From NCBI GenBank assembly GCA_016748015.1, contig JAAOMT010000295.1:744001-808000 (forward strand): DNA of 64,000 bases. Direction: 5' to 3'. The position numbers were made by a program, and so were the translations under genes. Positions within the stretch are counted from its first letter, which is position 1, and the number at the start of each line of letters is the position of its first letter. The notes beneath the pieces were generated by a model. It worked only from the letters and a program-made list of their open reading frames with translations. It was not told where the DNA came from and did no database searches. This document shows positions 13,370-64,000 of the stretch, in pieces. The DNA comes from Geosiphon pyriformis uo1. Lineage: Eukaryota; Fungi; Glomeromycota.

Positions 13370-13418
13370 TGTTTGTTGTTTTGTTGCTGTTAATTTAAAT
13401 AAGTGTTGGTTCTGTTTT

Positions 13419-17300: not shown

Positions 17301-19062
17301 GTTGTTCGAATTGATTCTATTGTTGTTTACTTGGTATTGGTTTTGTGGTGTGAATTGATTTTGTGGAATTAATCTTCAAACAGACACTTGATAATATTGT
17401 GTGGGTGGTTGTTGGTATTGCTGTTGAATTGGCTGTAGGGCAGGCTAATAATAGTTACTTTGATATTGGGGTCTTAGTGGATAGTAAGCTAGTGGTAGTG
17501 GTTGATAATAAGATTGCTGTGGTAAAGGGTAATGTTGATTACTCCTATTTTGTTGGTCTCATTGTAGCTTTCTGCAATCTCTTTTCCAGTGGCCAGAGAT
17601 TCCACAGTAATGGCAATTTTGAGACTGGTTATTAGAAAGTGGTGCAAAGTTATTTTGATTTCGTTTTTAGGGTGGTTGATATCTTTGGAGTTGCTGTTGT
17701 TGTTAGTTGGTGAAATAGTTTTCAACCTTCTTTGTGAGTTGGTCAATTTTCTCCTCAGCTGCTGAGCTGGTTTCTCCAATTGTCAAATTTACAAGTTTTG
17801 TGCAATTGGCCTCTTCCATGGCTATTTTATATCTTTTTGCATGCTGTATGGCAGAGTTTAAATCTTTTGAGACATGTGGGCAAACCTTTTTAATCAGTTT
17901 ATTCTTTAGACCAGCAATAAATTAATCCAAAATTTGAGTGTTCAAGTAATAATCATTGGTTTCTAGTTGACAAATTCTTCTGAGAAGTTTGTTAAACTTC
18001 TTAAGATAAGTTATAACAGATTTGGAGGATTCTTGTTTGATATTGCAAAACCAATTTCGAAGGGTGATAGAAGTATTATTGTTGGTGAACTGTTCAAGAA
18101 AGGCTGCTTTGAAAGTGTCCCAATCATTAAATGGAGTGGCCAAGTTTTCAAACCATTCTTCTGCTGTTCCTTTGAGAAAGTAAGGGATAGTTCTTAACAT
18201 TCTGACAGCATTTCAACCATTCACGTCTCCTGCTTTAGTGACTTGATCAAGCCATTCTTAAAGACTGGTTTCGATGTCCTCTCCTGAAAAGTCAGGAATT
18301 TTTGCAATATAAGTGGAAACCATTTCTTCTTCATTTTCCGAGTCTTCTGTTTCTTGTTCTGATTTGGTCTTTTCACTTTGATTTTCTGCTAAGTAGTCAA
18401 TAAGGTTTGTGCTGGTTAATATTGATTCTTGTTGTTGAATAGGGCTTTTGGGTGACTGAAAATCTTCTATTCTTGAAAATCAAATAAGAGGAGAATTTGG
18501 TATTTGTGGTTGAGCAAGTGAAATTGGAAATGGTGTAATAGAAAGTGGTAATTTGACACTGGTTCCTTGTTCAGGTGTTTGCAAGTGTTTGGCAGTTGTT
18601 TTTGTTAGTATTGAAGTGGTTTTTGAGTGTTGTTTTGTTTTTTGTTTGCCTTTGTTGCTTGTTGCTTGTTTCTGTTTCTGATTCAGAGTTAAAAGAGTAT
18701 TTGGACTGCACTGGATATTTTTCTTCACAATACTTGATAATGTTATAATTGAGTTCTTGAAAGTAGGTGGCAAGTGTTTTACTGTTAAGATCTTCAGTTT
18801 CTAATCGTGAATAGTGCACTAAATTATTGTAGAGATTGCTTCTAACTTCTGAAATGTTGTAATTTTCAAGAAGATAATTGTTGATACAGTTTTCAATATA
18901 TAGGTAAAGTGTTCTCTTGACAATTTCAGTTCCGTCTGAAATGTTAAATTTTTGCTTGCAATGGGTGTAAATTGACTGGTAGTACTCTAGAGTTGCTGTG
19001 TTTGGTGTGGTTGCCACTTTGAATTTTGTTGTTGCTGTGTTATTTCTGTGAGAGAGCACCAA
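17300..19062 (-). pseudogene. gag: Gypsy B gag (retrotransposon gag capsid plus CCHC) with ~240-aa N-terminal extension
   Basis: KIPDFSGED..EWL, YFLKGTAEEWF (17922-18200), CHYCGISGHWKRDC at ~17575-17615, and upstream ORFs 18480-18773 and 18571-19062. Confidence 0.85.
19047..19061 (-). promoter_or_regulatory. Primer-binding site of Gypsy B
   Basis: TGGTGCTCTCTCACA starts 2 nt inside the 5' LTR end. Confidence 0.75.
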
Positions 19063-19063
19063 A

Positions 19064-20049
19064 TATTACCAGAGGTTTTTGGTCTCTTTTCTGTAATGTT
19101 GTTGATGCCTGTTTGCTGTGAATTCACTTTTTCTGGATGTGGTTAAATCTCCAGTAACTGAATTTATCTTCAAATTATCTCCTATAATTTGAACTGCTGG
19201 GCTTATAAGTGGAATGACCAATTCTTTGCCAGTTACTTTATGTAGTTACGTTGTAGTAAATGTCAACTTTTTCCCAGGAATTGCTCATCTGGAAGCTCAC
19301 TAAAAATGTGTAGTTACTTTGCTGTGAAAGTCAACTCTTTTACAAGAATCTTGTCTATAGACTACCCTGATGATTGTAATAAGAAAAGAAAAGAAAAATA
19401 AAAGAAGTGTAAAAAGAAAAAAAAAATGTTTTATGGAAGTCATTTTGGATTCAAACCTAAAAGCATTTTAACAGTTTACTGAAATTGGTAGCTAGTCAAT
19501 TTCAAACTGTTTAGTAGGAATTGGTTAATTTCAAGGGAAATAATTAAGAATTTGATTTTTCGAATTATTTGATATTTATTTTGTTTCTGTGTGTAAAGGA
19601 TGATTCTAATTGATAAATTTCAGGTAAGATAAGATATATTTTTTCGAAAAGAGAAGCTCTTCTTTTATACAATTTGTTGTAATACTATTCTATGAACTTG
19701 AATTTTGCTATTTTTTACAATTTTGCTGAACTAAAGATACATTTGGTGAACTACAAGTTATTTCTGTGAACTATTAAATATTTCGGTAAACTATCAATTA
19801 TTTTGGCGAATTTCTACAAATTTCGGCAAACTTTTTGAATGTTATATAGTTCAGGATATTGCATAATTGATCATTACAATTAGGTTACATTTGTGTTATG
19901 TACAAATTGGATTATTAATTAAATGATAATTTCAGACATTTTGCTAATGTAATAAGTGATAATTTGAAATGATAATATATGTTAATTAATGATAGAAATT
20001 ATAAAGATAATTTCATGCTAAATAATATCTCTAATTTTGTCTGGTAACA
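19064..20049 (-). repeat. 5' LTR of Gypsy B
   Basis: Direct repeat of 10170-11155. Confidence 0.95.
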
Positions 20050-22743: not shown

Positions 22744-25020
22744 TTTTTTTTTATTAAAGTTTAATGAGCAAAGCCCAACTACTATTTAATATAATATAAT
22801 TATATAAGGTCTTAAATTAAATGTGACTTACATATTTTCTATATGTAATCAGCTATTTAAGCCAATTTAGGCTATATTACATTGATGCATCCAAAGAAAA
22901 CTTACTTAAAAATGATATCTTTTGAATAACAAAAAACAAAGTAGCATTGCAAGAAACCAATTCAACCAGTCATTTGGCTGTCTTTAAAACATCAGTTTTA
23001 ATATCAATAGATTCATGTTCCTAAAGAGACATCAAGTTAGAAAACACTTTATTATCCAAACCAACTGAGTGCTCTAAATCACCAAACATATTAATATCTT
23101 CTATGCAGCACTCTTTTTTTAAAAAAAGCACTTCTCTTCCTAATTTACCAACAACTTTACTAAAGGAACTCATATGCATCATAATCTTATTGACTTTAAG
23201 ACCAAGTTTACTACTTGAGACCAAATTTTTATTAATAAATTGTTCAAACAATTTGACCAAAAAACCAACTGGCTTAACAATAGACTCAACCAAAGCAAAA
23301 AGCTTGACCAAATCAGACTCCAAAAAAGCCAACCAAGAAAACACCAAGGAATTACTAATGACTATAAAAAAAAAAATAGAAACTGCCAAGAGAAGAAATT
23401 CAGAAGAATTCAGAAAAGCAGAAATCTTAGCATACAAAACACCACTAACAAAATGTGTTTTAAATATCTTAAGAATCTTAAGAAAGGAAGATAAAAAGAC
23501 TTTACAGTCTACAGCCAAATGACCTATTTCTTAATACTTAAAGCAGCACCAACAACCAAAAGTTTCCCACCAAATGCAGCACTTTCTTAAGATATTAGTT
23601 TTAACAACCACAGAATTCAAATCAACTTGGGAACCAAACATAATTAGAGCAAACTGAGAACAACATCCAGAATTAGGCAAATGAGGAATGAAACAAGTCT
23701 GGCCATCAACTTGGGAGATCATATTACTAATTTCAAAGACAGTACAGCCAGAAAAAAAATTGATCAACTTGGCCTTAAACCAATCATGAAACAAAATTGT
23801 CTTATTTTGATTGACAAAGGAAAGAATTCAAACATTATTTTTGCTTACCAAAATTAATCAGTGAGTAAGAACAAATGCAGCAGTATTCAATCCTTTAAAG
23901 TAAACAATTACATATTGCCAAACACCAGCAGACTTTAGCACAACACAAAAAACTTCACCAAAAATACCAAGAGCTGACTTAATATCAACAACAAACATAC
24001 CCAAAGACACATTATGCAGTACAACAGCAGCAGAAGAAAAACCAGATTTAGAAACCACCAAAAACTTGGCAATTTTGAGAGTGGCAAAGCAAACAGAGCT
24101 TGTAAGCTCAATTAAAAATACAGCATTCAAAAAACTTTGGAAAGCAAACTCAACACAAAAGAGTTTCACATTGTTCTTAAAAACAGATTTTGCATTCAAG
24201 AAACCATTTATAGACTAAAAAACAGTCTTAATATGAGCCAATTTGATCTTAAAAGTAGCATTAAACACCAGAGTGGAGGCCACTCATCCAGCAAACTTTT
24301 GACAACTAATAATGATTTTCCAAGCATTATCAGTGGCAGCACCAAAAACCAAAGAAAATGATTCAGCTTCTATTTGATCAGTCCAGTTCTTAAAAACAGA
24401 TAACATCATAGAAGATGATTGTTTTGCTTCTAAAACTGATAATAATCTACCACATTTGACAATGCAGTCAGTGGTTGATTTTGGCTCATCTTGAATAATG
24501 TGCTAGATGATGTTATAGAGATTTCACCCAAAATTTTATTAGAAACCACAAAGAAGTTTAGTATAATAATAGCAGAGGCAAGTGACTGCTCTTACTTTTC
24601 TGAACTTTTGGTCTTTTTGACTATTTTTTTTAAAGAGATGGTGCCAGTAGTACCAGGTATTAAAGCTATAGAAGAAAAAACCAGCTTGTTTACTGGTCTA
24701 TTATTAAAAACTTTTAGGCTCTTAATTAGAGTAAAAGCAACACTAAAACTAACCCAAGTATGTCTTTTTAAGAGAACTTTGACTGGTGAAAGACCAGCCA
24801 AAAATGAAAAAGTTGTTTTAGTAGCTACTAAAGACAGTTTTTTATGATTACTGAATAAAAAAAGGCTTCTAAAACGTTCTGCTTAGTTGCTTCTACAACA
24901 GAGAAAGCTCTTCTGGTTGAAATTTTATTAGATATCTCAAAAAAGATATTAGATACAGCTTTTTTACTCTTTGCTCTGATTGTGGTCATAAAATTAAGAA
25001 GATAAAGAGTATATAACTAT
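22744..25020 (-). mobile_element. ORF1-only (HAL1-like) non-autonomous retroposon, copy 2, with a LINE1-type 3' tail
   Basis: Degenerate ORF 24989>22877 is homologous along its length to 58644-60899. No ORF2. The 3' UTR matches LINE1 5718-5838. Poly-T at 22744-22752. No TSD is readable. Confidence 0.8.
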
Positions 25021-45300: not shown

Positions 45301-47190
45301 TTGGCACAAGGGCCATGTCACCAATAACTGTATTTTGCTTTCTTGCCAGATTTTCTATCAAAGGTTCTTCTGAAGATATTATAGTAGGGCCAGCAGATTA
45401 GCTTGCCATTTACCATGATTCCTTCTTTGTTAGCTTTAATATTGTTTAGTGGCTTGTTGTTGCTGGTAAAGATAGTATAAGCAAATTCAGCAGTTTTTTC
45501 TTGTTCTTTTTGATCTTTTTCTTCATTGCTCTCATCATCATCTAATTTATCTGATTGTTCTTTTTCTTGGTTTTGCTTGAATACTGAAGGAGTTGTCCAA
45601 TAATAGCACTTAACCACAATGGGCTTTTCACCACATCTGATGATTAACTCACAAAGTTCATAGTCAAGTAATGTTTTGGCTTTCTTGAACCACTCATTGC
45701 CAACAATTATGGTGTATTCTTTTGCTTCAAATACTTCTATGTCAGTTTTAATGCTGATGCCATTGATGCAAACAAGAACAGCTTTGGCTATGCCCAAGTC
45801 TTTTTTCTTGTTACCATGTACATTGGTCATAAGCCAAATTGAAAGTTCATTAATTTTTTTACCAATGGCTTCTAGGAAATATTTGGCAATTACACTAACA
45901 GATAATCTACTGTCTAGAATTAAATCAATAAAATAACCAGCCACTTGGGCTTTGCAAATCAGAAGAATGACATTATTGTTATCAGCAAGTCCAGTTTGGT
46001 GAGAGCATTTATTGGTTTTTGGTGTCTTCTTTTTTAAAATCAATGATTTGTAAAGATCTTTTCTGAACTGTGGATGAGTCATTAATTGGCCAAATGTAAT
46101 GTGTGCTGGAGTTTCAATGAGATCTTTAACAACAGAATAGGAACCAGATTTTTGTACTATCTTTAGGGGTTCCAATTTTGGAAAATTTTTAAAAACTTTA
46201 GTCTTTGGTGGCTCATTGTTATCAGCAGTTGATGTGAATGCTTTGTTTAGGTTCAGAACAAAATCAACCTTGGCTTTTTTCTTTTTTTTTGTTGATTCAG
46301 AAGTGTTGATTGCTAGTTCATTCATGTCATGGTCAATATCAGGTAAGTTAAAAGCATAAAAGAGGTTTTTTTCTAATTGGCTTGTACTTTTACCCTTTAA
46401 AGATGTGCCTACCAGTTTAAAGGCTGATAAACAGTGGCTTCAATTAAGGAATCCTCTCCAAAGAAATTGATGTTAACATAATTGAGTTTTTGATTGGAGA
46501 TATTGTTGTTAATGGTTCTGTTGTTTTAATTATCATTGTTTCTGAGAGCTGGAGAAAGCAAAGAAGGATTGTTGCAATCTCTTGAGAAATGTTTAGTTAA
46601 TCCACAGTGGTAGCACACAGGTGGGTTACGATTTTGCTGTCTTTAGTAAGAAGACTGCTAAGGCTAATTGAAATGTGGTTCAAATCTTGGTCTTTGTGGT
46701 TGCTGGTTATCTCTGACTGCTTGGGCTAATGGTTCTAATAGCTGAGCAAGATTTGCTGTAAGTCTATCTATCAACTGTTTATTGGGGTCTTGAGTTTGGA
46801 TGGCAAAAGAGATAGCAGCCATTGGTGAAGCAAAAGCCATAACAGGAGCAGAAACAAAAACTAGAAGAATAGATCCCAGATACATTCTTTGGTTATCTTC
46901 TATTTTCTGAACAAGTTCAATAGTCATATCTATTGTGGAATTATTTTTTAAGGCCAGAAGGGGCCAAAAAACATATGACAGATTTGTTCTTAATCCTTTT
47001 GTAAAAGAATGAATTTTTTGCTTTTCTGTTCAGTTTCTTTTTTTTTTTTTGTTAACATGTAGCCACACTGGTTTTTTATTAGTTTAGCCACACTCAAAAA
47101 GCATGACTTTTTTATAAAGCCAACTCACCCAATAATCTAAATTACAAGATGTGACTAACTACTAAGTAGTTATGCCCAACTACATACTAG

Positions 47191-47833
47191 TGTTATGGTT
47201 GAAACTTATACTTTTTATTAATTATCACATGTATTAGCCACTGATGTCACATAAATTAGCCACTTTATTTTTAGTAAGTAATCATTGACCTGATTATTGA
47301 CCACTTTTGACAGCTATATAAGTGATGAATCTTTTAGCTATAGAAAAGCATGAAGAAATCAAGGAAATCAAAATAATAAAATAACAACTTTTATCTTAAT
47401 TTTTCTCTTATCACTAATTTTCTTTTCTCTACTTTCAAGTATCTGAACATTTTAAAGATAAAAAATTACTTGTTGGTTATTTCTTACCCTTTTCTTGAAA
47501 TGTGTAATTGTAGCATTTGAAGATTATTAAATAAAACATGACTGAAGAGTATATCTGATACCTGATATTGAATTCTAAGAGCACTGACATGAGGCATAGA
47601 ATTATACCAGACGTGATCATTTGTTGACAGTATAGCCTATCTCTCTACCTTCAGATTTTCCAGTTACTTTTGAAAAGTATAGCGACTGAGATATTTTATG
47701 AGACTGATTTCACACATTGAATCCATACTTATTCAATTCACTCATTGAAGTTGAAATCCCTTTGATTATTTTCATCACCCTACAATTCTGTTCTCCTTTG
47801 CTATCCATTAGTTTGTTATTTCAATTCATAACA
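47191..47833 (+). repeat. 5' LTR of D+
   Basis: TGTTATGG...CATAACA. Confidence 0.95.
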
Positions 47834-47839
47834 TAAAAG

Positions 47840-47856
47840 TGGTGCTTCCTGTGAGG
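47840..47856 (+). promoter_or_regulatory. Primer-binding site of D+
   Basis: TGGTGCTTCCTGTGAGG, nearly identical to the PBS of C. Confidence 0.8.
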
Positions 47857-47885
47857 TTGTCAAAATCTACTTTGTTTCCTATTGT

Positions 47886-49426
47886 ATGAGTGATTATTCA
47901 TACCTGCCACAACAATCAGAAGAACACTTTGAAGCACATAACAAAAATAATCTAGACTTTATTGAACTTAATTCTTTGTTCTCCTGCTTGATTTGCTTTC
48001 CTATTAAAAAACAATTCAGCAAACAATTCTAAAACTTTTAGAACTGGTTCCTGAACAAGTATTTAGCTGAAACCTATACAGCTTATACAACCTATTACTT
48101 TGACCAAGCTTATTTTGAAGACAACTTTGAAGAAAAAAACAACAGCATTAATCAACTTTTATACTCAACAACCTTTGAACAACAGCCTCCTGATTTTGAA
48201 TATCTGAATCATCAAATCCACATTTGGATTGCTGCTCATCAATCAACTGAAACTCCTCTTGAAACAGAAGAAGAAAGCTATTAAACCACTCCTGTTTTTG
48301 ATCTCTTTTCAAGTGAATCAGAACACTCTACACAAACAGTTATACCTAAACCAATGGCTCAAGACTCTCTGCAACAAAACATTCTGATTGCCCTTCAAGG
48401 TATACAGACTGCTTTAGACCAAAGAAACAACACTCCATTATCATTATTCAGAAGTGATGTCTAAGATCTAATTAAATGGCTAGATGATTTTGAGAGAGCT
48501 GCCACAGCAAACCAATATGATAATAAATACAAGTTCCAAATCGTTGGTGGCTACCTCCAAGGCTTTCTTGCTACTTGGTTCTCACAAAAAACTAATGTCA
48601 ATGTTCAACAAAAAATTATTAGATGGGCATCAGCAAATGCTGAAGAAAACAACACCTCTTTTACTACCTAGTTTGAAACAAAATTCAGAATCCCAATATT
48701 AATATCCAAATGGCACATGGAACTGAAAAGAAAAACCCAAGGCTCTGGAAAAGTAATGACTAAATATGCCAAAGCTATCAGAAAACTAATCAAATGTGTA
48801 GATTCTGGAAGAAACTGGACAGAAGAGCAAAAGATCCATTCCTTTACAAAAGAATTAAAAACTGATCTATCATATGCTCTTTGGCCTCTCTTGGCTTTAA
48901 AAGACAACCCAACAATGGACATGGCTATTAAATTTGCCCAACAAATTGAAGACAACCAAAAGATGCACTTGGGATCCACACTTCCAGTTTTTGCTCTTGC
49001 TCCTATTATGACTCCTGCTCCACAAATGGCTGCTACCTCTTTTGCTGCCCAAATGAAAATTTAATAGATAAACTCACAGCAAATTTTGCTTAGCTATTAG
49101 AATTTTTGGCCCAAGCAGTTAGAGAAAATCAACAACTCCAAAGACCCAGATTTGAACTCTGCTCTAATTAGTCTCAACAACCACCATATTAAAGACAGCA
49201 AAATCATGGCCCACCTGTGTGCTATTGTTGTGGACTAACTGGATACTTCTCAAGAGACTGCAACAATCTTCTATTGCCCTCTCCAGCTCCTAGAAACAAT
49301 GACAATTAAAACAATAGAACCACCAACAATAATGTTCTCAACCAAAAACCAAATAATGCCAACATCAATTTCTTTGGAGAAGATCCCCTAATTGAAGCCA
49401 CTGTTTATTAGCCTTTAAACTAGTAG
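47886..49426 (+). pseudogene. gag: D+ gag (N-terminal H/CxxC domain, capsid, CCHC knuckle)
   Basis: MSDYSYL..SCLICFP..KWLDDFERAATAN..; ORF 48717-49064; knuckle CYCCGLTGYFSRDC. Confidence 0.85.
49414..49420 (+). promoter_or_regulatory. Putative -1 ribosomal frameshift slippery site U_UUA_AAC (gag to pol)
   Basis: Correct phase in the gag frame, a gag stop follows, and the -1 frame is the PR ORF. Conserved in D- at 46415-46421. Confidence 0.75.
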
Positions 49427-52104
49427 ACACACCTCCAAAGGATGAGAGTACAAGCCAACCAGAAAAAAACCCCTTTTTCACTTTTAATTTAACTGATAAT
49501 AATCATAATATGGATAAATTAGCAATCAACACCTCTAAATTAATCAGAAAGAAGAAAAAAACTAAGATTGATTTTGTCTTGGACCCAAACAAAGCATCCA
49601 AATCAACTGCTAATAACAATAAGCTACCAAAAACTAAAGTTTTTAAAAATCCTCCAAAGTTGGAACCTCCAGAAATTGTACAAAAATCTGGCCCTTATTC
49701 TGTTGTTAAAGATCTCATGGAAATCCCAGCATACATTATATTTGGCCAACTAATGACCCATCCACAGTTCAGAAAAGATCTTCACAAATCATTGATACCA
49801 AAAAAAAAGACACCAAAGATCAACAAATGCTCTTGCCAAGCTGAACTTGCTAATAACAGCAATGTTACCCCTTTGATTTGTAAAGCCCAAGTGGCTGGTT
49901 ACTTTATTGATTTGATTCTAGACAGTGGGTTATCTGTTAGTGTAATTGCCAAACATTTTTTTGAAACAATTGGCAGAAAAATTGATGAGCCTTCCACAAG
50001 ACCAATAACCAATGTACATGGTAACAAGAAGAAAGGCCTGGACATAGCCAAAGCTATTCCTGTCCACATTAATGATATCAGCATTGAAACTAATATGGAA
50101 GTATCTGAAGCAAAAGAGTACACTATCATTGTTGGTAATGAATGGTTTAAGAAAACCAAAGCACTATTTGACTATGAACTTTGCAAGCTAACCATCAGAT
50201 GTAGTAAAAAACCCATTGTGATTAAATGCTGTCATTGGACAACTTCTCTAGCAACCAAACAGAACCAAGAAAAAAAACAATCAGATGAATCAAATAATGA
50301 TGAAAGCAATAATGAAGATCAAGAAGAACCAGAAAAAACTGCTGAACTTGCTTATACTATCTTTACCAACAATGGCAAGCCATTGGATAATGTTAAAGCT
50401 GACAAAAAAAAAATCATGGTAAATGGCAAGCTAATCTGCTGGCCCTACTATGATATCCTCAGAAGAACCTTTGACAGAAAACCTAGCAAGAAAGCAAAAT
50501 ACAGTTATTGGTGGCATGGCCCTTGTGCATGATGCTAGTGTAATAAACTTTTGTATTCACCAAGTGATGAATGCAAATCCTGCCTAATCTATTACAAAGA
50601 TTGGAAACCAATTAGCTTGATACCTCGAAAAGAACTTAAAGAAGTACAAAAGTCTTTTAAGAATAAACCATCTGAAATCCAATTACTAGTTGTAGAACAA
50701 AAAAAACCTTCCCTTGAAGAAAGAAAAATAGACATTGAAAATCTGTTGGCTAGAAATAGCCCAGTTATTTCAAAAGAAGGTAACATCCCTGGACAAATCC
50801 ATGTAATACAACATACCATTATCACAAAAGAAACTTGCCCCATCTATTTAAAGTTTTATCAATCCAATTGACACAATGATGAGTTTATCAAGAAAAAGAT
50901 AAACCAGATAAAAGATCTTGGATTCATACAAGAAACCAAAAGTAAATGAGCTTTTCCAGTTGTAGTGGTATCCAAGAAAGGTGGAACTCTACACTTCTGT
51001 ATTGACTACTGCCAACTAAATGCCATCACTATAAGAAACATGTACCTACTCCCCAAAATTGATGCAATGCTAAATAAATTTAATGGTGCTGCTTTCTTCT
51101 CAACTATTGATTTAACTGCTGGATTTTGGCAAGTAAAAATGGATCCAGAAAGCAGAAAAAAAACTGTCTTCATTACTAAGTATGGTATCTATGAATTCAC
51201 AGTCATGCCTTTTGGTCTTACCAATGCTCCTTTCATCTTTTAACGCCTAATAGATAAAGTGTTTAAATCAGTAAAAGAAAACTTTGTTTTGGTTTATTTG
51301 GACGACATAATGGTATATTCAAAAACCTGGGATGAACACCTTGAACATTTACAGAAGGTTTTTGACCTGCTCAGAAATGCTGGCCTTAATATCAATCCAA
51401 TCAAATTTTTCTTTGGACATCAATCCATCCAGTTTCTTAGTCATCTTATTACAAAAGATTGAATCTTCTCTGACCCAGCTAAAGTTGAAAAAGTCCAAAA
51501 CATTAGACAACCAATAAATGTTCTTGAACTACACTCTTTTTTTGGTTTGGCCTCTTACTATTGTAAATTTATCAAAGATTTCTCCAAAATTGCCTTTCTT
51601 TTCAACCAGCAACTCAGAAAAAATGTTAATTATCATTAGGGCACTCATCAACAAAAAGCTTTTGAATTTCTAAAGGAAAAACTTGTTACTGAACCAATTC
51701 TCAAACAACCTAATCTGGACCAATCTTTTATCCTCCACACTGATGCATCTGGCTATGGACTTGGTGCTGTCTTTTCACAGAAAGATGAAAATAGCAGAGA
51801 ACATGCCATAGCATATGCCAGTAGATCCCTCACACCAGCAGAAAAGAACTATTCAGTTACTGAACAGAAATGTTTAGCAGTAGTTTGGATTATTAGCTAC
51901 TGGGATCAATATCTTCTTGGTGCAAAATTCTTAGTGGTAACAGATCATCAAGCCTTGGTTTGGCTGTGCAAGAAAAAGAAGCTGAAACACAAATGAATAA
52001 CTTGCTGGATACTCCACTTAGATGAATTTGACTATGATATTCAATACTGCAAAGAAGCAAATCATCAAAATGCCAACACTCTATCTAGACTTACCATCCA
52101 GTGA
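49414..52104 (+). pseudogene. pol: D+ pol: PR (LILDSG), RT (YLDD), RNase H; no dUTPase
   Basis: ORFs 49510-50532, 50551-50871, 50965-51243 and 51259-51462; ends SRLTIQ*. Confidence 0.93.
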
Positions 52105-52168
52105 CAATACAACCTCTCAAACCAAACCAACTTAATTATTAGTAACTCCTTTACAAACAAACACGATA

Positions 52169-53429
52169 ATGAACTTGAACAACTACTCTGTTTTAATGAA
52201 ATTTTTGGGTAAAGGACAATACCCACCTGAATACACTCAACAGCAAAGAGAACATTTGTGCAAACAATCAAATTTTTATTTGATCCACCAGAACCAATTA
52301 TACAAAAGAAACAGAAAAGATCCTGACCATCTCCAGAGAGTCATCAGATTTGAAAAAAAAGAAATTGTAATATACAACATGCACACTGACTCATTAGCTG
52401 GACACTTTGGAAAAACAAAAACAATTCAGAAAACTTTAGCTTATTATTATTGGCCTATTTTGGGAAAAGACATTGCTGAATACATTAAAATCTGTAACAT
52501 CTGCCAAAGAAGAGGCAAACCCAATTGCAAAAAAGATATCTATCCAATCTCTGTTGGTCAATCCTTTGACAAAATTGGTATAGATGTTGTTGGACTTTTA
52601 ACAATCACTCTTGATGGCAACAGATATATTATTACAGCTACCAACTATCTTACAAAGTAGGTAAAAGCAAGAGCTATCCCAGACCAAATAGCAGTCTTAA
52701 TAGCCAATTTCATTTATGAAGATATTATTTGCCATCATGGCTGCCCCAAAGAACTTTTATTTGATAGAGGAAGAGCTTTTCTCAGTACACTGGTTGAAAA
52801 ACTTTGTAGAAAATGGGAATACATCATAAACTTTCCTCCTCTTATCACCCCCAAACAAATGGCCTAGTGGAATGTTTTAATAGAACATTATGTGAAACCC
52901 TAGCCAAAACCAGTGAAGAAACAAACTTATGAGACAAAGTACTGTTTTCAGCTTTGTTTACTTATAGAACTGTAAATCATGACATAACAAATTATGAACC
53001 TTTTTTCCTGCTCTATGGATGCATGGCAACACTACCAATAGAAATTGACATTGAAACAATACCCTTTGAAGAGATCACAATAGAAAATTACAAAGCCATT
53101 TTGCAAAGAAGACTTGGTACCATTTTTGACTCCTTAGTAGAAGCATGAATAATTGCTTTTGAAAAGATAAAACAGTTTCAAGAAAAGCTTAAGAAAAAAA
53201 AACCTATAAAACACTTTCTTTAAGTGTTGATAACTTGGTACTAGAATACTGTTCTGACAGAAACAATGTTTATGGTGATAAATTTTCTAACTGGTGGAAA
53301 GGACTCTTTATAGTCAACAAAGTCTTGAACAATGGTTTTTATATTCTTCAAGATCAATCCGAAACAATCTTCAATGATTGTCCTGTTCATGGTGCACAAC
53401 TCAAAAAATATCATAAACGACCTGATTAG
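52169..53429 (+). pseudogene. D+ integrase (separate ORF with its own ATG)
   Basis: ORFs 52169-52660, 52954-53148 and 53235-53429. Confidence 0.92.
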
Positions 53430-53521
53430 CTGTCTGTTGTAGTAATACTGACTCAAATGATTAGCAAAAATCAAGTATAAATAAATGCACCATACCTAAA
53501 ACAGAGATATCTTCAATCAAC

Positions 53522-54177
53522 ATGAACAATTATTTTCTGAATCAAAACATTCAAAATGCTTTTTATACTTTTCATGAGTATTGGATCAAAAACTATCCAA
53601 ATACTACTCTGACCATTGAAAAACAAACCACCATAACTGATAACAGTAGAACACATACTGTTATTAGACAAAGAAAACTACTACCAGAAGAGAAAAAATT
53701 GGTAGTAAAATGGATAAATATCTGTTGGAAAGTATAACAGCAGCTATACTTCCACTTTCCAGCACAATTGGAAAAACACTTTAAGAAATCTTACCCATAG
53801 ACAAAAACTTGTCATATGAAAGGCAATTAGAACTCTATGGTTATCTTGGTAAAATCATAGAGGATATGAAACTCATAAAGAAAACAACTTCAGAGATACA
53901 AACAGAAATTTTGGGCATTATATGATTAAATGTTCCAAGAGTTTTAACAATTGCTAGAAGAACCAAAACTCTAATATAAAGATTTGGTCTCTTGGATACA
54001 AAACTCATTTTGCTTCAAGTGTTATATATCTTATCCACAAAAGACTTCAACAAACTAGTTAGCTTTGAGTTAGATAAAACCCTTCCAATAAATTACACCA
54101 TAAATAGTTTAATTTTGCTGGAGCTCAATCTCTTTGGAGAGGATGATGTTATGGTTGAAACTTATACTTCTTATTAA
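53522..54177 (+). pseudogene. D+ ORF3 (~218 aa), ends inside the 3' LTR
   Basis: MNNYFLNQNIQNAF...LYGYLGKII...ARRTKTLI...LSTKDFNKL...VETYTSY*; present in all four D copies. Confidence 0.78.
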
Positions 54178-54813
54178 TTATCACATGTATTAGCCATTGA
54201 TGTCACATAAATTAGCCACTCTATTTTTAGTAAGTGATCATTGACCTGATCATTGACCTAGTCATTGAGCTGATTATTGACCACTTTTGACAGCTATATA
54301 AGTGATAAATCTCTTAGCTATAGAAAAGCATGAAGAAATCAAGGAAATCAAAATAATAAAATAACAACTTTCATTTCAATCTCTCTCTTATCACTAATTT
54401 CCCTTTCCTTACTTTCAAGTATCTGAACATCTTAAAAATAAAAGATTACTTGTTGGTTATTTCCTATTCTTTTCCTGAAATATGTAATTGCAGCATTTGA
54501 AGATTATTGAATAAAACGTGACTGAAGAGTACATCTAATACCTAATATTGAATTCTAAGAGTGCCAACATGAGGCATAGAATTATTATAGACATAATTAT
54601 TTGTTGACAATATGGACTATCTTTCTACCTTCAGATTTCCCAGATACTTTTAAAAAGTATAGCAACTGAAATATTTTATGAGACTGATCTCACACATTGA
54701 ATCCATACTTATTCAATTCACTCATTGAAGTTGAAATCCCTTTGATTATTTTCATCACCCTACAATCCTGTTTTCTCTTGCTATCCATTAGCTTGTTACT
54801 CTAACTCATAACA
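54147..54813 (+). repeat. 3' LTR of D+
   Basis: Repeat of 47191-47833 plus two extra 12-bp units. Confidence 0.95.
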
Positions 54814-55246
54814 CTAGTATAACCAGAAAATTTATAAGGTATCCCACTATTACATAAAGTAACTCTACCACAAAAAACATCAACCAATATCTCATTACAC
54901 TGCATGAATCTATCACCCATCTTAACTTTGGATATGCTGTCATTATTACTACTATTTTCTAATAATATATGTATGTTGGACCCATTCAATGGGCTTCTCT
55001 TACCTCTATTATCAATATCCACTGATTTTTCCCACTCAGTCTGTGCTTTGCAACATTCTTCTCATAACTTATTTCTTGCTTGAGTTACAGCCCATTTACA
55101 CATTTTAATCAGTATATTATTGTTAGTCTTTTGATTGATGTTAGCAAAGGTATTGATTCTTCTAAATTGCTTATCAATCAATCCTTTGCATAGCAGATCT
55201 ATGTTGGGTGTCAACATAATGTACTCTTAGTTTATGGTTTTATGTT

Positions 55247-55274
55247 CCCCTCCCCCCCCCCCCCCCCCCCCCCC
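55247..55274. repeat. Poly-C tract (CCCCT followed by C23)
   Basis: Read directly from the sequence. Confidence 0.9.
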
Positions 55275-58200
55275 AGTCTTTGATAAGCACTGCATCCACT
55301 CATTTCTTATCTCATCTATTAGTGTTTTGCCTTTTTGAGTATTCAAAAAGCATTCCCAAAAGTGCTGGTTGGTCTCTACTTCCATGTAACATATTTTGCA
55401 AAGATTGTTTAGATACACCAGAAGACATCTGTTGTACAGCACTTCTGCCATTGGCAGCATGTTGTGAAATGATTTTATAATAAATGTATGTATTGCTGAG
55501 GAACCAGCTGAGATGAAGCCTGAAGACATTTTACCATCCCAGTTTTAAATCTTGGTTGTGCCCTTCCAGTCTATTTCTTGGTCTAAAGGCCCTAATGTCC
55601 TCTGGACTTTGTTATTGCTTATCCAATCCAAAGCAACTTGAAGCCCAGTTTGTTGGCTTAGGAAGTGTCTAATATTTAAATCCAACTCAATTTTTCTGCA
55701 AAAGGAAACATAACTAACATCTTTGGCATTGTAGGCCCACTCCACTGTGTTGAAAGCAGTAGCTTCTTTGGCTAGTTTATTAGCCTTCTCATTTTCAGAT
55801 ACTTCAGTATGTACAGCCACTTTGTTTATGGTAAGATCAATCTTTTTTTTACCTATTACTGCTTTGATTGCATTTTATGTACACCAGTTAGAAGTTTTGA
55901 ATAGACAAAAGGGAATTTTTAGACAACTATTTTCGAGCTGTTAATACAACTGCTTGACTATCTGTGTTTAATATCAGTTTGCATTTGTATGGTACTGTCT
56001 CCAAAGCCAGTAATACAGTCTTAGCCTCAGTTTTTGTTGATAACAATGTTCCATCTACTGCTATACCATAACTAGCTTTTATTTCATGTATTACAAAAAC
56101 AGCTGCTCTTCTAGCTTCCACAGAACCAGCTTTTACCAATAAGCCATTTGTTGATATTTCTATTTCTTTTCTGAGCCTCAACTTCTCTCATACCCTCTTC
56201 CATTGTGGCAATAAGCTGTCAGGAATATAGATGTAAATAGAGTCTTTTTGCAATGTTTCCAAATCATCTGGTATTTGGGTATCTAATTTGTGTATTCCCA
56301 GTGCTTCACATTGGGCTATATCAATGTTCCTGTATTCATCCATAATGATCATAGATTCTAGTACCTTAAACCATCTGGGTATTCTACCACTGTCACTCTG
56401 TCTGTACCTCTTTGTGAAGTCCATCCATGTCATTAGCAATCCATCCATGTTCTGTACCTAATGCAAATACAAAATGTTCTCCTTTCTCAGTAAGCCTCTA
56501 ACTTTAGTATAGGTTGCACTTGAAGCTATAATAGTCTCAATTAAGTGTTCATGTAGTTTTGAAGATTCAGATACTCCATGTGTGTTACCAGAGCTTTTAA
56601 ATGAGATGCCCCTTTCTTCCATTATCTGCATGATATTTGCTATAAGATTAATCCCTGGCTTAGATTATTCTTTAGTAGGATATTCAAGTATACTATGAGC
56701 TGACCATCTTTGTGCTTGCAAGTTGGCTAATCTGATTTTTGTAGCCATTTCAGCAATATCATTACCATTCAATTTAACCAACAAATCTGTGATCTTGTTT
56801 TTTGCTTGTATATCATCAATTTTGAACAAGTTGTACAAAGATAAGTGATGCATGACACTGGCTGGACCTTTTTCTTTACAATGGCTAAGATTTTTGAGGT
56901 TTATTTTCTGGCCCAGCTATTTGGAATATGGGTCAATTGAGATCTAAATTCTATTACAGGACTGAGTACACTGTTGAAAATGTAAATTACCTGTTTTTTA
57001 GTAATGTGTTTCTTCCTAATAACGCCATACACTGCTTCAATATCAGATCTTATCATTTTCAGCACTATTTTATTCTTTCCATCTGCTCTAATCCACACTC
57101 CCAAATATTGGGTATATATAGATGGATCTAACAATTTTAAGGATTGTTTATTTGGCCCAAATTTCAGTGGCTCAACCAACAAAAATTTTCTTTTGAAGGG
57201 TTTGACCACTATTGTTTCAGTCTTATCTAAGTTGATCTCAATATCCACTATTCTAAAGAAAAAACTGGCTGTGTTCAAAATACTCTGCATCCCTTGTTTT
57301 GAGTTAGCTATCCACATTGTGTCATCAACAAAAGCTAAGTGGTTTACTGATACTGCCAAAGATTGTGTGTTAGGTTGATTGTTCTATTTTTTCCATTCAG
57401 CTGTTAATTTGTATTTTTGACTATAATTGGTTTTTTTACTTCACACAGTAAGAGGTCATAGAAAATCTTCCACATAATGGGTGAGCTTGTTTCCTTCTGA
57501 TCCAGTCTATCTTGTACTTGATATTCATCACTTAATCCAAACTCAGTTATGATCCTATTGCTTCTATTGTTGTGCATCAAGCCAAATAACTCAGTAAACC
57601 TATTGTTTATCTTGATCTTTCTTAGTGCAGCTTTCATGGGTTTCCATCTGACTGAGTTGTATGTCTTTTTCATGTTCTGAAATGTAAACCAAGCTTCATT
57701 ACCAAATTCTCTTACATGTTTAGCAACAGCATTAATTACATAAATTGGCACTGCTGTGGAGGTATTCTTTAGAACTGAGGTGTTGTAACCTTTTAGGACA
57801 TTGTGAAGCTCACATGCTTTTGATATTCTTGCAATTAGAATCTTTGTTAAGATCTTTCTAGTACTCTCAATTAGTGTGATTGGTTAATATTGCCACCCTA
57901 TTCTTTTGGCTTTGGAATCAGTATGACTTGTGCTATTCTCTACTCTTTAGGCATGTTTGCTGTATCTATGTAAGCATTAAGCAATGTTCTCAGTTTGGAC
58001 TTAGTATTAGGCCCAGCTTTCCTCCAGAGTTCAGCTTGAATGTCTGATGGGCCAGGGGCTTTGTTATAAGGTGTGTGGCTCAATATGTGTTCAAATTTTT
58101 CATTTGTTATTTCAATTATCACACCATCAAAGGCATGGTCTGGGATGCTCTCAATTGGCTTAAATCTGTGTTCCCAATTCTTCCACAGTTTAGATTCAAG

Positions 58201-58635
58201 AATTCTTGTCCTAGTCCAACCTTGAGCTTTTTTGTTTACTAGCTTCTTGATCTTATTAGGATCATCATGAAATTTGCCTTCTTCAATGACATGGTCCAGT
58301 ATAATTCTTTGTTTTTTTCTGTTCAGAATGCTTTTGATCATAGCTCTTTTGTTTAGTTCTAAGTTTTGTTGTCTTTTGATGATATTGTTCACTATTTGTC
58401 TCTGCTGTTGTAGTCTGATTCTGGCATGCAGTGTTGATCTGTATTTTTTCTGGATGCTAAGTAATTCTAAGATAAGCTTATCTTTTGGAAGAGTCATCAG
58501 ATATGTAATTACTGTTTCAGGATTCAGCTGTTTCCATTTAGCCAACAGCTACATAACATTGTTATCATGCATATCTGCATTGTTTACTCTTATTTGTTTG
58601 ATTATATCAGCAACAATCCTTACAAGCTTGTGATC

Positions 58636-61036
58636 AAAATTTCATGACCACAAATAGAGCTAAAAATAAAAAAGTTGCAAATATTACTTTTCCTATAGTA
58701 ACTAATAAAGTTTCAACATGAAAGGGTCTCTCTGTTATTGAAGCAGCTAGACAAAACGTTCTGGCTACATTTCTTTTAAAAAATATTAGTGAAAAGCTGC
58801 CTTTAGTAGCTTCTGGTTCATTTTCTTTACCTTTGGCTGGTAGTTCTTCTCCAGTCAAAGTTCCTTCCAAAAGACACACTTGGATTAATCCCAGTGTTGT
58901 CTCTACTACTTCTAAAAGCCCAAAGATTTTTAATAACAGACCAGTCAACAAGTTGGTCTTTCCTGCTCTTACTACTCCCACTACTACTTCTACTACTACT
59001 ACTTCACAAATGGCCGTGAAAGCAAAAAATTCCAAAAAACAGCAGCAGACAGTCACAACTGCTATGGTCACACCAAACCTTTTTGTGGTTTCAGATGAAA
59101 TCTTTGGTAAGATCTCCACAGCAGCAGCTAGCCCTCTTCTTAATATGGATGGCAACAGCAGCAGCACATCTCCCAAGATGGGCCAAGATTAACCACTGGC
59201 TGTGTTGCCTGATGTGGTACTCTCCAGCAGATCATCACCAATCCCAGTAGCAAAACAGTCCATCAACCCAAATGATCTCAAAGATTGGGCTGATCAGATG
59301 GAAATGGAATCAACTGTCACTCTCCCAGTTTCTGGCACTGCTGATGGTGGTGCTTGGGAAAATGTGTATGGTTGTCAGAGATTCTCTGGTTGGGTGGCCT
59401 CCAATCTAGTATCTGGTGCCACATTTAAGATCAAGATGACCCTTCTTTGTTCCTTGTTTCAGCTGCTGCCTGGTTGTATTGGGCTTAAGTCAGTTTCACA
59501 AGATGCTGTTAAGTTGTTCTGTGTGGAATTTGCATCTCAGGAGAGTCTAACTGGTGCCACCAAAGTGGCCATTGGTAATAAAATTTTTTTGACCACTCTT
59601 AAGATTGCATGGTCTTCTGGTGTGACCTCTGCTTCTTCTCTTTTTCTGTCAGTTGCACTGCACAACATACCTTTGGGTACCTCTTCTGATGACATCAAAA
59701 CTGCTCTTGGCATTTTTGGTGTTGTCACTTCTGTTAAGTTAAAGCCTGCAATATGCTGTGGTTTATTTTAAGGACACTTCTTCTACTGCTACTGCTCTCT
59801 CTCACTGGTCTGTTTTGGTCAGAAAAGACAGTGTTAGGATTCTTCCCATTACCAACCAAAAGGAGATTATCTCCTCAAAAGATATCTTCAAAGCTAAGCT
59901 GGTCAATCTTTCCTTTGGCTGTACTGCATTTGAAATAAGTGATTTGGTCTCCCAAGTTGGTGGCCGTACATGTTTTATTTCCTGCTCCTCTGATTTCTAT
60001 TGACGTCAACAGTTTGCTGTGGTTATCTTTGATTCCTTGGAATCTTTGAACATTGCTGTTTCTAAAACTAGTATCTTATGTGGTTGCTGTATCTGGTGGG
60101 AAACTCCTGGATGTCGCTGCTACTATAGGTGTCAAGGTCTGGACCATTTGGCTTTAGAGTGTAAGGTGTCCCTACCTCTCTCTCCCAAAGTCCCTTCCAA
60201 CTTCTCTGGTGGCCCCAAAGTTTTCAAATCCTCATTTGCTGGATCCAAATCTTATGCCAAAGCTGCTGCTATTGTGGTTCCTCCTGTTGCTGCTGCTGTT
60301 GATATGAACTTGGATCATGGTGGTTCTCTTCCAACTATTACATTCATGTTGCCTGTTGCTTCTTTTGCTATCAATAATGCTGTCAAAGCTAGGTTGGCTT
60401 CTCTGGAATCCCATTTTAGTAAACTGTCTTTGCTAATAAAATCCTTGGTTGAGCCTGTTGGTGCTCTGGTTGTTTTAGTTACCAAATTGTTGTCTACTCC
60501 ACCTGCTGTGGATGTGTCTATTAAGGAAAGTGTAGCTGGGTTGGCTGGGCAGAATAAAGACTTGGCTGCCATTACTATTGTGACGCAGAAAAGATTGACA
60601 TGTCTAGAAAAAAGTGTGAATGGGCCTGCTTAGAAGATGTGTCAGATAATGATGACATGAATGACAATGATGATGATGATATCAAAGATAAAGATTTCTC
60701 TGTCTATGATAACACATTTGATGTTATGATGCATTTATGGGAAGATCAGCCATCCAGTATCAAATCCAGTCCTGATCTAACTGCTAAGTAAATAAGTGGT
60801 ATAGTTAAGAATAGTCATGAGCTTGTTAGCATCATGGGTAAGATGAATGAATTAGATATGTTTAATACACTTGGTAGCATAGGTAGTACTAGCATGTAGT
60901 TAGAGCTTTCCACCTATGGTTAGCTGCATCTTGTAATTTTTGTATTATTGGATGAGCTGGCTTTATGAAACCATCACATTACTGTTGACTTAACTAATAA
61001 ATGATCAGCATGGCTACATGTTAACAAAAAAAAAAA
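58636..61036 (+). mobile_element. ORF1-only (HAL1-like) non-autonomous retroposon, copy 1; 14-bp TSD, poly(A), LINE3-type 3' tail
   Basis: TSD ACAAGCTTGTGATC at 58622-58635 and 61037-61050; poly(A) at 61026-61036; a single degenerate ORF. Confidence 0.92.
58644..60899 (+). pseudogene. LINE ORF1-like protein (~750 aa: S/T-rich N-terminus, RRM-like segments, CCHC knuckle, coiled-coil/acidic tail)
   Basis: MTTNRAK...; ORFs 58833-59192, 59202-59771, 59758-60003, 60019-60633 (YYRCQGLDHLALEC) and 60600-60791; ends GSTSM*. Confidence 0.85.
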
Positions 61037-62058
61037 ACAAGCTTGTGATCCAAGCATTTTTTCTTTGTGTGTGCAGATTGGGCTCCCACTTTTCTTTTTG
61101 GTAAGCAGTCAACAGTTTGTAACACAGTCTCCTTAATTATAAGCCACATCTGGTTTAAATCATCATTGCTGTTATCTATTGATTTTCTTTGTGCTTTATC
61201 TGTTAGTCAATTAATTTCTCTTGCATAGATCTCCCATTGAACTCCAGATGCTTCTCTAACATCAACCATGGTTGTGCTACTCTTCTTTCTTTCTGATCTA
61301 GATTTTTTAATGCCTGCCAATATTCTGTTAGATTGAATAATTGTTACTACTGCTTTGTGATCAGTGCTAAATAATTCATTAACATCAATCACCCCAATGT
61401 TTGTGACCAGTAAGGCTGTAACTGCATCAGTAAACACATAGTCTAATCTTCTTTGTACTCCATTTGATGCTCATGTCTTTTCTGGATTGTTTGTTGCATA
61501 TACTTCATGTGTATCCACTAAATTCATATGTTGTAGTGTTGTAGCAGTAGGACATGCTTTGACCCTGTTTGTAACAAATGTTTCTTCAAGTGATTTGGAT
61601 GTTAGATCTTCAATCAAATTGCTTGCTACTATGATTATCTCTTTGTTTTGCTTTCCATAGGTGATTTGGAAGCAGACATGTACAGCCCAACTATATGCAC
61701 ACTAATTTTACTTCTAAATTTCAATGCCAAATATAACAGCCTTCTATGGTATCTCCTGATTGTTTCCACATGATGCATCCAACCTTTTTTGACCAATATA
61801 CCAACTCCAGTTCCCATTTGTTTCTCATCACTTGACTCCCAAAAGGCATGATATTCATCAGAGCCAAAAAATACACCCTTTTCTTTGGATGAAGTCAGTT
61901 TAGTTTCCATAATAATCACAAAGTCAAATTGTTCTTCAATACACCATTGTAGCACCTCTTCAGCTTTGCCAGGATTATTAAGTCTTCTAACATTAATAGT
62001 ACCAATTTTCCAAGTATTGTTATTGGAGTGGTTCTGTTCTGTGTTGGAATTAAATGTG

Positions 62059-63854
62059 CTACACATCATCTGTTTCCATAGATTTAATTTCTTCAGCAGT
62101 AGAACTGCTTTAACTACTCTGTTTTTTCACTTGCTTCAGTAATTTCAGAATGAGTTTCAATAATTTTTTAATTTCCTTGATTTCCCTTTCTGGGTTGTAT
62201 GCCTTATTTTTCTCTGCCAAGTTAGACTTAATTAGAGTATTCTGGTTTGGTACCCTACTTTTTACCTTTCTTTTTCTCTCTGTATTGTGATTTTGCTGTT
62301 GAGCGACCATCATGTCTTTTTCCTTCTCTACTGTTACTTTAAGTTTGGCAGCTACTGTGCTCAGCAGTTTGGCTATTTTATCAACCTGTAGTCTCAACTC
62401 ATTAATTTAAGCCTTCTATGGTTGGTTGACTCCTCCTTTTTTTGGTTGGTTTTCTTTATTGTTTACTTGTGGACCAGGTTTTTGGAATTTGTTTGAATTT
62501 GAGCCATTCAGATTATAAGGCAGTCTGAGTGCAACCATTTTGGCATATGATTTTCCACCAAAAGCCTTGATATTTTCCTCTGGAACATTCTTCCTAACAT
62601 ACAGTTTTGCCAATCTAATATTGTTGGTAACTTTCTTGGTATCCCCTTCTTTTTTCCTTTGTAGAGTTGAACATTTGGAAACCAAATGCCCTATCTGGTA
62701 ACAAAAGTGGCACTCTTTGGCATCAGTAGGCACCCAGTGAACCAGTATGTTTCCAATTACCAATGGCTTTTTGGTAGCATTGTTGCAACTAGCTTCACTG
62801 TCAAATCCTATGTAAGCACAGCCCATCCTTGTATAGTTCTTACTAGTTCTTGAGATGAAGCAAGATCAGGCTTTAATCTGATCCAGAGTGGTGCTCAAGT
62901 AGTGAGCAGTACAGTTTTATAACAAACCTACTAGTTTGGCTTCCCAGGTTTTCCTTTGCTCAATAATCTTCTGGGTCTTAACCATTAAGTAAATTCTGAC
63001 TGTCTTTCCTAACCATGGTTGACCATTGGTTTACAGCTCTGGTTGCTGTATTCAACCACTGCAGATTGCCATTTTCCAGCTACTTTGATTTGAACTTTTT
63101 TAATCTTGTCAAATTTTTTTATAGCAGCTCCCACTTCTCTGTCTGAAATACCTAAAAAGATATCTCTTACCAGGACTTTTCTTTGACCAGCCATCTGATT
63201 GGTAATGCCATCAGTAGCCATTAGAAATGATTCAATCTTTTTATTTGCTAGTATTTCTCTGGCCTGGTCCCTTCCAGCCACTTGGGAGAAATCCACTCAG
63301 ATTTCTTGGTTTCTTGCCATCACAGCTCTCAAGAAATAACTGACATCTCCCAAAAGATTGTAAATCCACCTCACTTTCTTCTCCATAATTTTTTTTGGTA
63401 TATCTATTACTTGCACAAAAAGCACATGTCTTTTGGTTCCATAAACCACAGTTTTCTATCCTTTCTTATGGTTTGGTTCCATAAACATGGGTTTTTTGCC
63501 AAGTGATTTACTACTATATTGTCCTGAACTTGGACTTTCTATTCTGCTAGATAGGCCTGATTCAGAGTCTTCCATGTCTTCTATAGTGTTATCTGAATTA
63601 GCTTTATCTTTGTTTGCATCAAATAGATTGTTCATTTGCTTCTCAATTTCTACCACAGAATTTCTACTGTTAATCCTGTCCAAAATATCAGGGTTGCATT
63701 TTCTTAGAGCTGCTTCTATCTGCGCAGCTCTTTCACTATTTCTATTAGGTACTTTTGAAGGTTTATCCAATTTTTTTAGGGACTTTGAGGCCCCTTTTTC
63801 ACTAGTTCAAGCTTCTATTTGGAATTTGTTGCTATTTTTTCCTTTGTTAAACAT
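62059..63854 (-). pseudogene. LINE3 ORF1
   Basis: MFNKGKN..; ORFs 63456-63770, 63009-63296 (WQSAVVEY), 62416-62826 (CCHC) and 62110-62397. Confidence 0.85.
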
Positions 63855-64000
63855 TGGTTGCAAAACAAAGTTGTTGGTTTGACCAGTTGTGTTTTTGAAT
63901 AAATTTTTTTTAATAACTTGGTTGAATCTTTTGGTTAGATCTTTTACACTTATTCTTCCAATATGTCTGTATTTTTTATTAGTTTTTTCCTCTAGTCTGT

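Follow-up and report, generated by a model that had tools for sequence, protein, structure and literature searches.

An ORF1-only retroposon family in Geosiphon pyriformis that seems to have exchanged its 3′ tail

Introduction

A 64,000-nt stretch of the genome of the fungus Geosiphon pyriformis uo1 (GenBank assembly GCA_016748015.1, contig JAAOMT010000295.1, positions 744,001 to 808,000 of the forward strand; hereafter, the window) holds a polyadenylated retroposon of 2.4 kb, designated family A, which lies in a nest of retroelements. It specifies a single protein of the type encoded by the first open reading frame (ORF1) of long interspersed nuclear elements (LINEs), while its 3′ tail is that of LINE3, an autonomous LINE present in the same window. 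How has an element of this kind been copied, and how did it come by the tail of a LINE whose own ORF1 is only distantly similar?

In our assessment, family A quite probably belongs to a long-lived lineage of ORF1-only elements in which the 3′ recognition tail was swapped, and this lineage seems to have changed its helper LINE at least once. The anatomy of the element, its copy numbers, the sharp boundary of its tail and the conflict between the tails and the protein phylogeny were all observed directly, and are described in turn. An independent ORF1-only lineage switching between helpers had already been proposed in an initial annotation made from the sequence of the window, and the proposal is supported by junctions found in many copies, by a single ORF1-only clade and by an approximately unbiased (AU) test.

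Structure of the family A element

The window copy has inserted into a LINE3 element, between the endonuclease (EN) and reverse transcriptase (RT) regions, and is flanked by a target-site duplication (TSD) of 14 bp. Its parts are as follows.

58622-58635 (+), left TSD, ACAAGCTTGTGATC, read directly and identical to 61037-61050
58636-61037 (+), family A ORF1-only retroposon, decayed, with at least 35 full-length relatives at 80–92% identity
58644-60899 (+), broken ORF1-like frame of about 751 codons (83% and 67% identity by tblastn of the frame of L029, a relative described below)
60882-61025 (+), LINE3-type 3′ tail, comprising the entire 3′ untranslated region (UTR), the stop codon and the five codons before it (GSTSM), placed by the sharp start of LINE3 homology
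61026-61037 (+), poly(A) of 12 nt, read directly
61037-61050 (+), right TSD, read directly

The TSD and poly(A) that the initial annotation had assigned to a 2.4-kb element were thus both read directly at 58622-61050. The sole coding content is the frame running from the ATG at 58644 to the TAG at 60897-60899, which opens with an S/T-rich N-terminal part and closes with an acidic C-terminal one, with RRM-like domains, a CCHC knuckle and long helices in between. In this copy the frame is disrupted by four stops, 11 gapped codons and several frameshifts, and the element is 5′-truncated by about 20 nt relative to the true 5′ end of other copies; both ORF1-only copies in the window, this one and that of family B described below, are dead. 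No similarity to EN, RT or RNase H was found inside 58636-61037 by tblastn with the corresponding pieces of LINE3, and a Pfam search with L029 returned RRM_1 and zf-CCHC only, in agreement with the earlier description of the element as ORF1-only.

Family A copies in the genome

The 128-Mb assembly that holds the window was searched, and the best 40–63 candidates of each genome search were scored. At least 35 full-length copies of family A, spanning positions 2-2402, were recovered at 80–92% identity, and the protein search scored more than 60 copies. All of the best 120 protein matches are Geosiphon pyriformis entries named 'hypothetical protein G9A89_...', and the family A protein has matches to at least 266 'hypothetical proteins' in this genome. 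In other copies the 5′ end consists of an A run followed by CTCTTTCTCTCCTAAATTTCATG. TSD matches of 11–17 bp were found in 13 of 29 full-length copies, the median match being 11 for a copy's own flanks and 7 for mismatched flank pairs. Family A therefore displays the hallmarks of retroposition, with poly(A), TSDs and many copies sharing the same ends, and the copies sit inside other repeats on many contigs rather than in head-to-tail arrays confined to chromosome ends, as in HeT-A. On C665 there are two mirror-image blocks (403821-408672 and 434947-439827), each with a full family A copy, a second copy in the opposite orientation that is cut short near position 2084, and small inverted pieces from close to the tail; they look like a duplicated and rearranged cluster.

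The best-kept copy, L029, has an open frame of 706 codons. Its Pfam matches are to RRM_1 (3e-10) and to zf-CCHC (19.6 bits, just below the cut-off of 20.8), with nothing else, and the CCHC motif CYRCQSLDHLAVDC is legible, so that the protein has both an RRM and a C-x2-C-x4-H-x4-C knuckle. The AlphaFold model of the 706-aa protein is poor (mean pLDDT 39.8), and moderate confidence is reached only by long helices at 580-674 and, best predicted of all, an RRM-like beta-alpha-beta unit at 336-396. A search of solved structures gave only weak matches to the Lin28 zinc knuckle (E 0.08–0.33).

Pairwise ratios of nonsynonymous to synonymous substitution rates (dN/dS) among 29 family A copies had a median of 0.51, and those between L029 and copies of other subfamilies were 0.37–0.54, values to be read with the caution that the NG86 method overstates dS, and hence understates dN/dS, when transitions dominate. 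They provide modest evidence that the frame may have been maintained by selection while the family diversified. Nearly every copy contains stops (1–10, mostly TGA), so family A is probably extinct.

The LINE3-type tail

The element carrying the family A insertion is also the source of the matching tail in the window, once a second insertion is taken into account.

54814-64000 (-), host LINE3 with ORF1, EN, RT and RNase H, interrupted by family A and running off the window end (tblastn with pieces of L061, 61–86% identity)
47191-54813 (no strand assigned), long terminal repeat (LTR) retrotransposon of 7.6 kb in the last codons of LINE3 ORF2, found by self-blast with the junctions read
47039-47190 (-), LINE3 3′ tail and poly(A), separated from the LINE3 body by the LTR element (junction readings; at least 40 genomic LINE3 tails are 89–97% identical)

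The LTRs of the 7.6-kb element (47191-47833 and 54147-54813) are 87.7% identical and its TSD is CTAG. It splits the end of LINE3 as ...GGT TAT ACT AG / LTR element / T ATG TAG, and the host LINE3 and the tail matched by family A are thus one and the same copy. The GYTSM ending reported for LINE3 ORF2 is correct, and becomes visible in the window only after 47191-54813 is removed. Among the ORF2 ends of 29 other LINE3 copies, 26 read GYTS followed by M, V or I and then the stop, and three differ slightly from this (GYISM or DYISM). The ORF2 stop is about 320 codons downstream of RNase H.

Within the window, blastn matched 60888-61037 to 47191-47039 (-), with 75% identity over 156 nt (E 4.5e-20), and gave no other such match; the alignment of the last ~150 nt with the LINE3 3′ end had been claimed beforehand, and the quoted shared blocks are present. 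The last 330 nt of 28 family A copies and 29 LINE3 copies were then aligned, and majority sequences of these tails were used for identity measurement only, no full-length consensus being built. The two tails are 77% identical as a mean of pairwise comparisons and 82% identical between majority sequences over 145 nt, whereas in the 170 columns upstream of the boundary identity is 33–35%, the level of unrelated AT-rich sequence. Homology sets in no more than about 15 nt from the stop codon and continues to the poly(A), the 3′ end of family A being homologous over this whole length to the 3′ UTR of LINE3. LINE3 ORF2 lies upstream of the tail in 29 of the 29 LINE3 tail loci examined, the truncated fragment in the window aside. 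LINE3 copies are 91% identical to one another in the tail and only 72% at the end of ORF2 just upstream, a difference that points to constraint acting on the LINE3 tail.

A common fold was predicted with RNAalifold from 11 family A and 11 LINE3 tails (alignment A1), in which TGTAGTTA, in the region of the stop codon, is paired with TGGCTACA, immediately 5′ of the poly(A). This terminal stem is retained in all 22 aligned tails, and folding z-scores were -2.0 to -4.2 for the better-preserved tails and -0.03 for one decayed family A tail. A shared tail fold is plausible rather than proven. One apparent case of covariation, CATG/TGTG near the stop with CATG/CACA near the poly(A), was rejected, as both sites look like decayed CG; CGTG and CACG are still present at these two variable sites in some copies. 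Between copies, CG alternates with TG or CA at these sites (alignment A1, columns 6-7 and 137-138) and TGA is the commonest stop, which fits the decay of methylated CpG in the repeats of this genome.

Two further observations concern LINE3. Several of its copies (L035:2148-2230, L019, L022) have a short upstream frame, MPQIWKNKFLQRNL and a stop, straight after the 5′ motif described below and before the long ORF1. At 3280-3774 (-) of the window there is an ORF1-like frame with a degenerate CCHC-like motif, 23% identical to LINE3 ORF1, which belongs to another element.

Family B and LINE1

A second ORF1-only element of the window, designated family B, ends in a different tail, and its relevant features are the following.

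22744-25020 (-), family B ORF1-only retroposon, heavily decayed, of a 2.27-kb family with at least 35 full-length copies at 75–82% identity
Parts of this copy (-): ATG at about 24989, stop at 22879-22877, tail at 22876-22753 and poly(A) at 22752-22744
5712-5866 (-), LINE1 3′ UTR, matched by the family B tail profile at 5826-5712 (at least 40 genomic LINE1 3′ ends are 81–87% identical)

Families A and B are 64% identical at the nucleotide level over 1.5 kb and 41–55% at the amino acid level, bearing out the earlier recognition of 22744-25020 as a homologous ORF1-only element. In 12 family B copies compared, the 5′ end is related to that of family A (an A-rich run, then CTCTTTGTCTCCTTAATTTTATG), and there is poly(A) and, in some, a clear TSD. 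The family B tail is unrelated to that of family A. A profile of 13 family B tails was run with nhmmer against the window and about 450 kb of loci that included some 60 family A and LINE3 tails, and the only match outside family B was 5826-5712, the last 115 nt of LINE1 (E 4.4e-13). The similarity is roughly 60% by eye, and 66% over 92 nt by blastn. The LINE1-type tail claimed for this element is therefore upheld by the profile match, although weakly and from one LINE1 copy, and a closer LINE1-type partner of family B may exist.

LINE1 itself runs from 22480 to 20048 and from 10171 to 5712 (-), and its RT is 41% identical to that of LINE3. The two parts are separated by an LTR element at 10172-20047, which splits the LINE1 endonuclease region and has LTRs of 982 bp (10172-11153 and 19066-20047) that are 94.3% identical.

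Families A and B, LINE1 and LINE3 share a type of 5′ end, an A run followed by CT(C/T)TTT...CTCT(C/T), seen at about 22480 (LINE1) and about 25000 (family B) of the window, at L022:139 and in L019 and L008 (LINE3), and in L002-L029 (family A). It may be a start-site or promoter motif of the non-LTR elements of this genome. As proof that family A descends from LINE3 it was rejected, since LINE1 and family B also carry it.

Phylogeny of the ORF1 proteins

Geosiphon proteins of about 600–720 aa that start with MTT(N/T)RAKSKK have at least three types of C-terminus: ...GSTSM (family A), ...SSGAST (family B) and ...PTFDSA, a third and abundant type. A fourth ORF1-only family matches the first 640 residues of protein P0121, and many of its copies are stop-free in two matched stretches (C632:369448-371568, C773:1166635-1168758, C710:884734-886857 and about 30 more), so that this family may have been recently active. 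Among 1.84 billion cluster representatives searched, 777 matched, and those looked up were Geosiphon proteins or unnamed metagenomic proteins at 27–32% identity.

A careful maximum-likelihood tree was built from the common core (26 rows, 384 columns; unrooted). For LINE3, the row combines both halves of a natural copy, L022, that is split by a family A insertion, and the window LINE1 was read with X at stops. The main groups and their support (bootstrap / SH-aLRT) were as follows.

All ORF1-only proteins, as one clade, 100/99
Family A, 97/96
Families B and D, 100/98
Autonomous LINE1-type ORF1s, the window LINE1 included, 100/100
LINE3 ORF1 with metagenomic sequences, 98/96

A quick tree of 57 rows agrees. 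The ORF1-only clade holds both tail types, and LINE3 ORF1 is distant from it, so the monophyly that the initial annotation had anticipated is recovered, along with its impression that the ORF1s of families A and B are closer to each other than to those of the tail donors. Within the tree the ORF1-only protein appears nearer to the LINE1-type ORF1s than to that of LINE3, a weakly supported placement.

Alternative explanations

LINE deletion derivatives are common, and families A and B might each be a plain internal deletion of an autonomous LINE with the same ORF1 and tail, in which case no exchange took place. Family A has its first ~19 nt and last ~150 nt in common with LINE3, as a derivative would. 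Its 5′ motif is not specific to this pair, however, being present in LINE1 and family B, and LINE3 ORF1 is just 24–27% identical to that of family A and lies far from it in the tree; constraining the two to group together costs 44.7 log-likelihood units and is rejected by the AU test (p-AU 5.5e-6). Family A-type ORF1 is at most ~31% identical to any autonomous LINE ORF1 examined. An autonomous parent of this ORF1 type was sought, non-exhaustively, among annotated proteins and the best-scored genome matches, and within these confines none was found for either family. Five long gene models (P0001, P0020, P0026, P0121 and P0149) at first appeared to join a family A- or B-type ORF1 to RT/RNase H, and all five were rejected as fusions spanning two adjacent or nested elements. 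In P0149 an ORF1-only piece precedes a complete LINE that has an ORF1 itself, and in P0026 a LINE3 RT/RNase H piece precedes a family A frame. The 29 LINE3 tail loci, with LINE3's own ORF2 upstream in each, also speak against a parent of this kind. The junctions are not single-copy events either, at least 35 full-length family A copies carrying the same tail and family B having at least 35 of its own. We regard an origin by deletion alone as unlikely.

A second possibility is that one ORF1-only element was the partner of the common ancestor of LINE1 and LINE3, and that its daughters tracked the tail of their own LINE without any switching. The three deep branches (ORF1-only, LINE1-type, and LINE3 with metagenomic sequences) are joined weakly (76/34), and families A and B each share their last codons with their own LINE, as one original deletion ending there predicts. 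Against this, the path between families A and B in the 26-row tree is about 1.0 change per site and that between the LINE1 and LINE3 ORF1s about 4.1 (branches summed by hand), so the former distance is about a quarter of the latter, which argues against simple co-divergence; the RTs of LINE1 and LINE3 are moreover the 41% identical pair noted above. The parasite protein would have had to evolve several-fold more slowly than those of its hosts, a poor fit to a dN/dS near 0.5, and co-divergence is in our opinion very improbable.

The reverse exchange, in which LINE3 took its 3′ end from a family A-type element, is favoured by the facts that similarity carries no direction and that the tree has no known root, but there is little likelihood of it, as two diverged LINE3 subgroups (ORF2 ends 72% identical) both bear the tail at 89–97%, which suggests that it is old in LINE3, and as the sister family B has a LINE1-type tail, making the LINE3-type tail the odd one out among the tails read (A and B only).

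The preferred explanation, an ORF1-only lineage that exchanged its tail, has points that weigh against it as well. The selection signal is modest, given the bias of NG86 on dS, and the first 706 codons are stop-free in only one of the more than 60 scored family A copies. As only the best 40–63 candidates of each genome search were scored, an uncommon autonomous LINE bearing this ORF1 could have escaped notice. The union of ORF1-only and LINE1-type proteins has the weak support given above (76/34) and the tree is unrooted, which leaves the swap without a proven direction. In the tail, one family A sequence folds no better than shuffled sequence (z -0.03), and compensatory double changes occur in just 2 of the 26 pairs of the predicted fold. 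The match between the family B and LINE1 tails is weak, much below that between family A and LINE3, and comes from a single LINE1 copy.

Proposed mechanism of mobilization and tail exchange

Under the preferred explanation, family A would be a non-autonomous, protein-coding non-LTR retroposon, with a polyadenylated RNA of 2.4 kb that starts at the 5′ motif shared with LINEs and specifies a single RNA-binding protein of the ORF1 type, in which RRM domains are combined with a CCHC knuckle and long helices. This protein would act on its own RNA. As family A lacks an endonuclease and a reverse transcriptase, copying by a LINE ORF2 protein would be needed, and such trans-mobilization, by target-primed reverse transcription, would leave poly(A) and TSDs of about 10–17 bp. 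Families A and B and at least two further families would constitute one old ORF1-only lineage. On the branch leading to family A, the segment from the last five codons through the poly(A) would have been replaced by the matching segment of LINE3, likely by template switching or recombination, and we infer that family A gained the LINE3 3′ module and not the reverse. A tail fold pairing the stop-codon region with the bases before the poly(A) would explain the location of the breakpoint. The 3′ module would be what the LINE3 RT recognizes, with the tail deciding which RT is used, and the new tail probably lets the LINE3 RT recognize family A RNA.

Comparison with known systems

The HAL1 elements of mammals are deletion derivatives, with ORF1 and ends coming from their own L1 helper, and to our knowledge the L1 RT is not thought to require a specific tail. 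Like HAL1, family A is a non-autonomous, poly(A)-tailed relative of LINEs that codes for ORF1p only and is present in many copies. It differs in that the ORF1s of families A and B form their own deep clade, at most ~31% identical to the autonomous LINE ORF1s examined, and in that these ORF1-only sister families bear the tails of two LINEs with RTs only 41% identical. HAL1s arose several times, according to a passage in PMC5753468 that cites Bao and Jurka (2010).

The 3′ ends of families A and B resemble those of short interspersed nuclear elements (SINEs) in being homologous to the 3′ UTR of a partner LINE, and in that related families carry the tails of different LINEs. Tail exchange of this sort is known in CORE-SINEs. 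SINEs proper are short and non-coding, with a small-RNA head and a pol III promoter, whereas family A is 2.4 kb long and protein-coding, nearly all of it being one reading frame, has neither such a head nor such a promoter, and has its tail boundary inside the reading frame. The tails of SINEs derive from LINE 3′ regions and serve recognition (PMC5786205).

Family A also shares with HeT-A the coding of an ORF1-type protein only and, as we infer here, dependence on a foreign RT. HeT-A, of Drosophila telomeres, is a non-LTR element that codes only for a Gag/ORF1-type protein and relies on the RT of another element. It transposes to chromosome ends only, unlike families A and B, the copies of which are dispersed and flanked by TSDs. 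HeT-A and related Drosophila telomere elements are described in PMC2173066.

Among fungi, the Kryze and Satine sequences (EKA family) of Blumeria graminis are LINE ORF1 sequences that vastly outnumber complete elements, and of 34 sequences matching the ORF1-bearing consensuses over their full length, only one had RT-RH downstream (PMC4641428). Unlike families A and B of Geosiphon, these were interpreted as truncated copies of two-ORF LINEs, some of them co-opted as effectors, and neither a separate ORF1-only lineage with defined ends nor tail exchange was reported (PMC4641428). The likeness to Geosiphon lies in the excess of fungal LINE ORF1 sequences.

Implications

Together with gene models in public databases that fuse neighbouring elements, ORF1-only elements inflate the list of 'hypothetical proteins' for this genome, which is of practical consequence. 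Half-LINEs are known from mammals and tail exchange from SINEs, and a coding ORF1-only lineage that has persisted as its own clade and changed its tail would bring these two phenomena together. Such a lineage suggests that, for some LINE groups, a parasite can provide its own ORF1p and borrow ORF2p only, and that a 3′ module of some 150 nt, with a closing stem that spans the stop codon, suffices to redirect an RNA to another RT. The latter is a testable statement on template choice by stringent LINE RTs. A broader view is that of a diversified parasite lineage, with at least four families, at least one of which has open frames, whose own ORF1 has been under selection and which has moved between unrelated helpers by means of a structured 3′ module starting within the final codons; on this our opinion is evenly divided. 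If it is true, ORF1 and the tail recognized by the RT would be separable and exchangeable modules of non-LTR elements.

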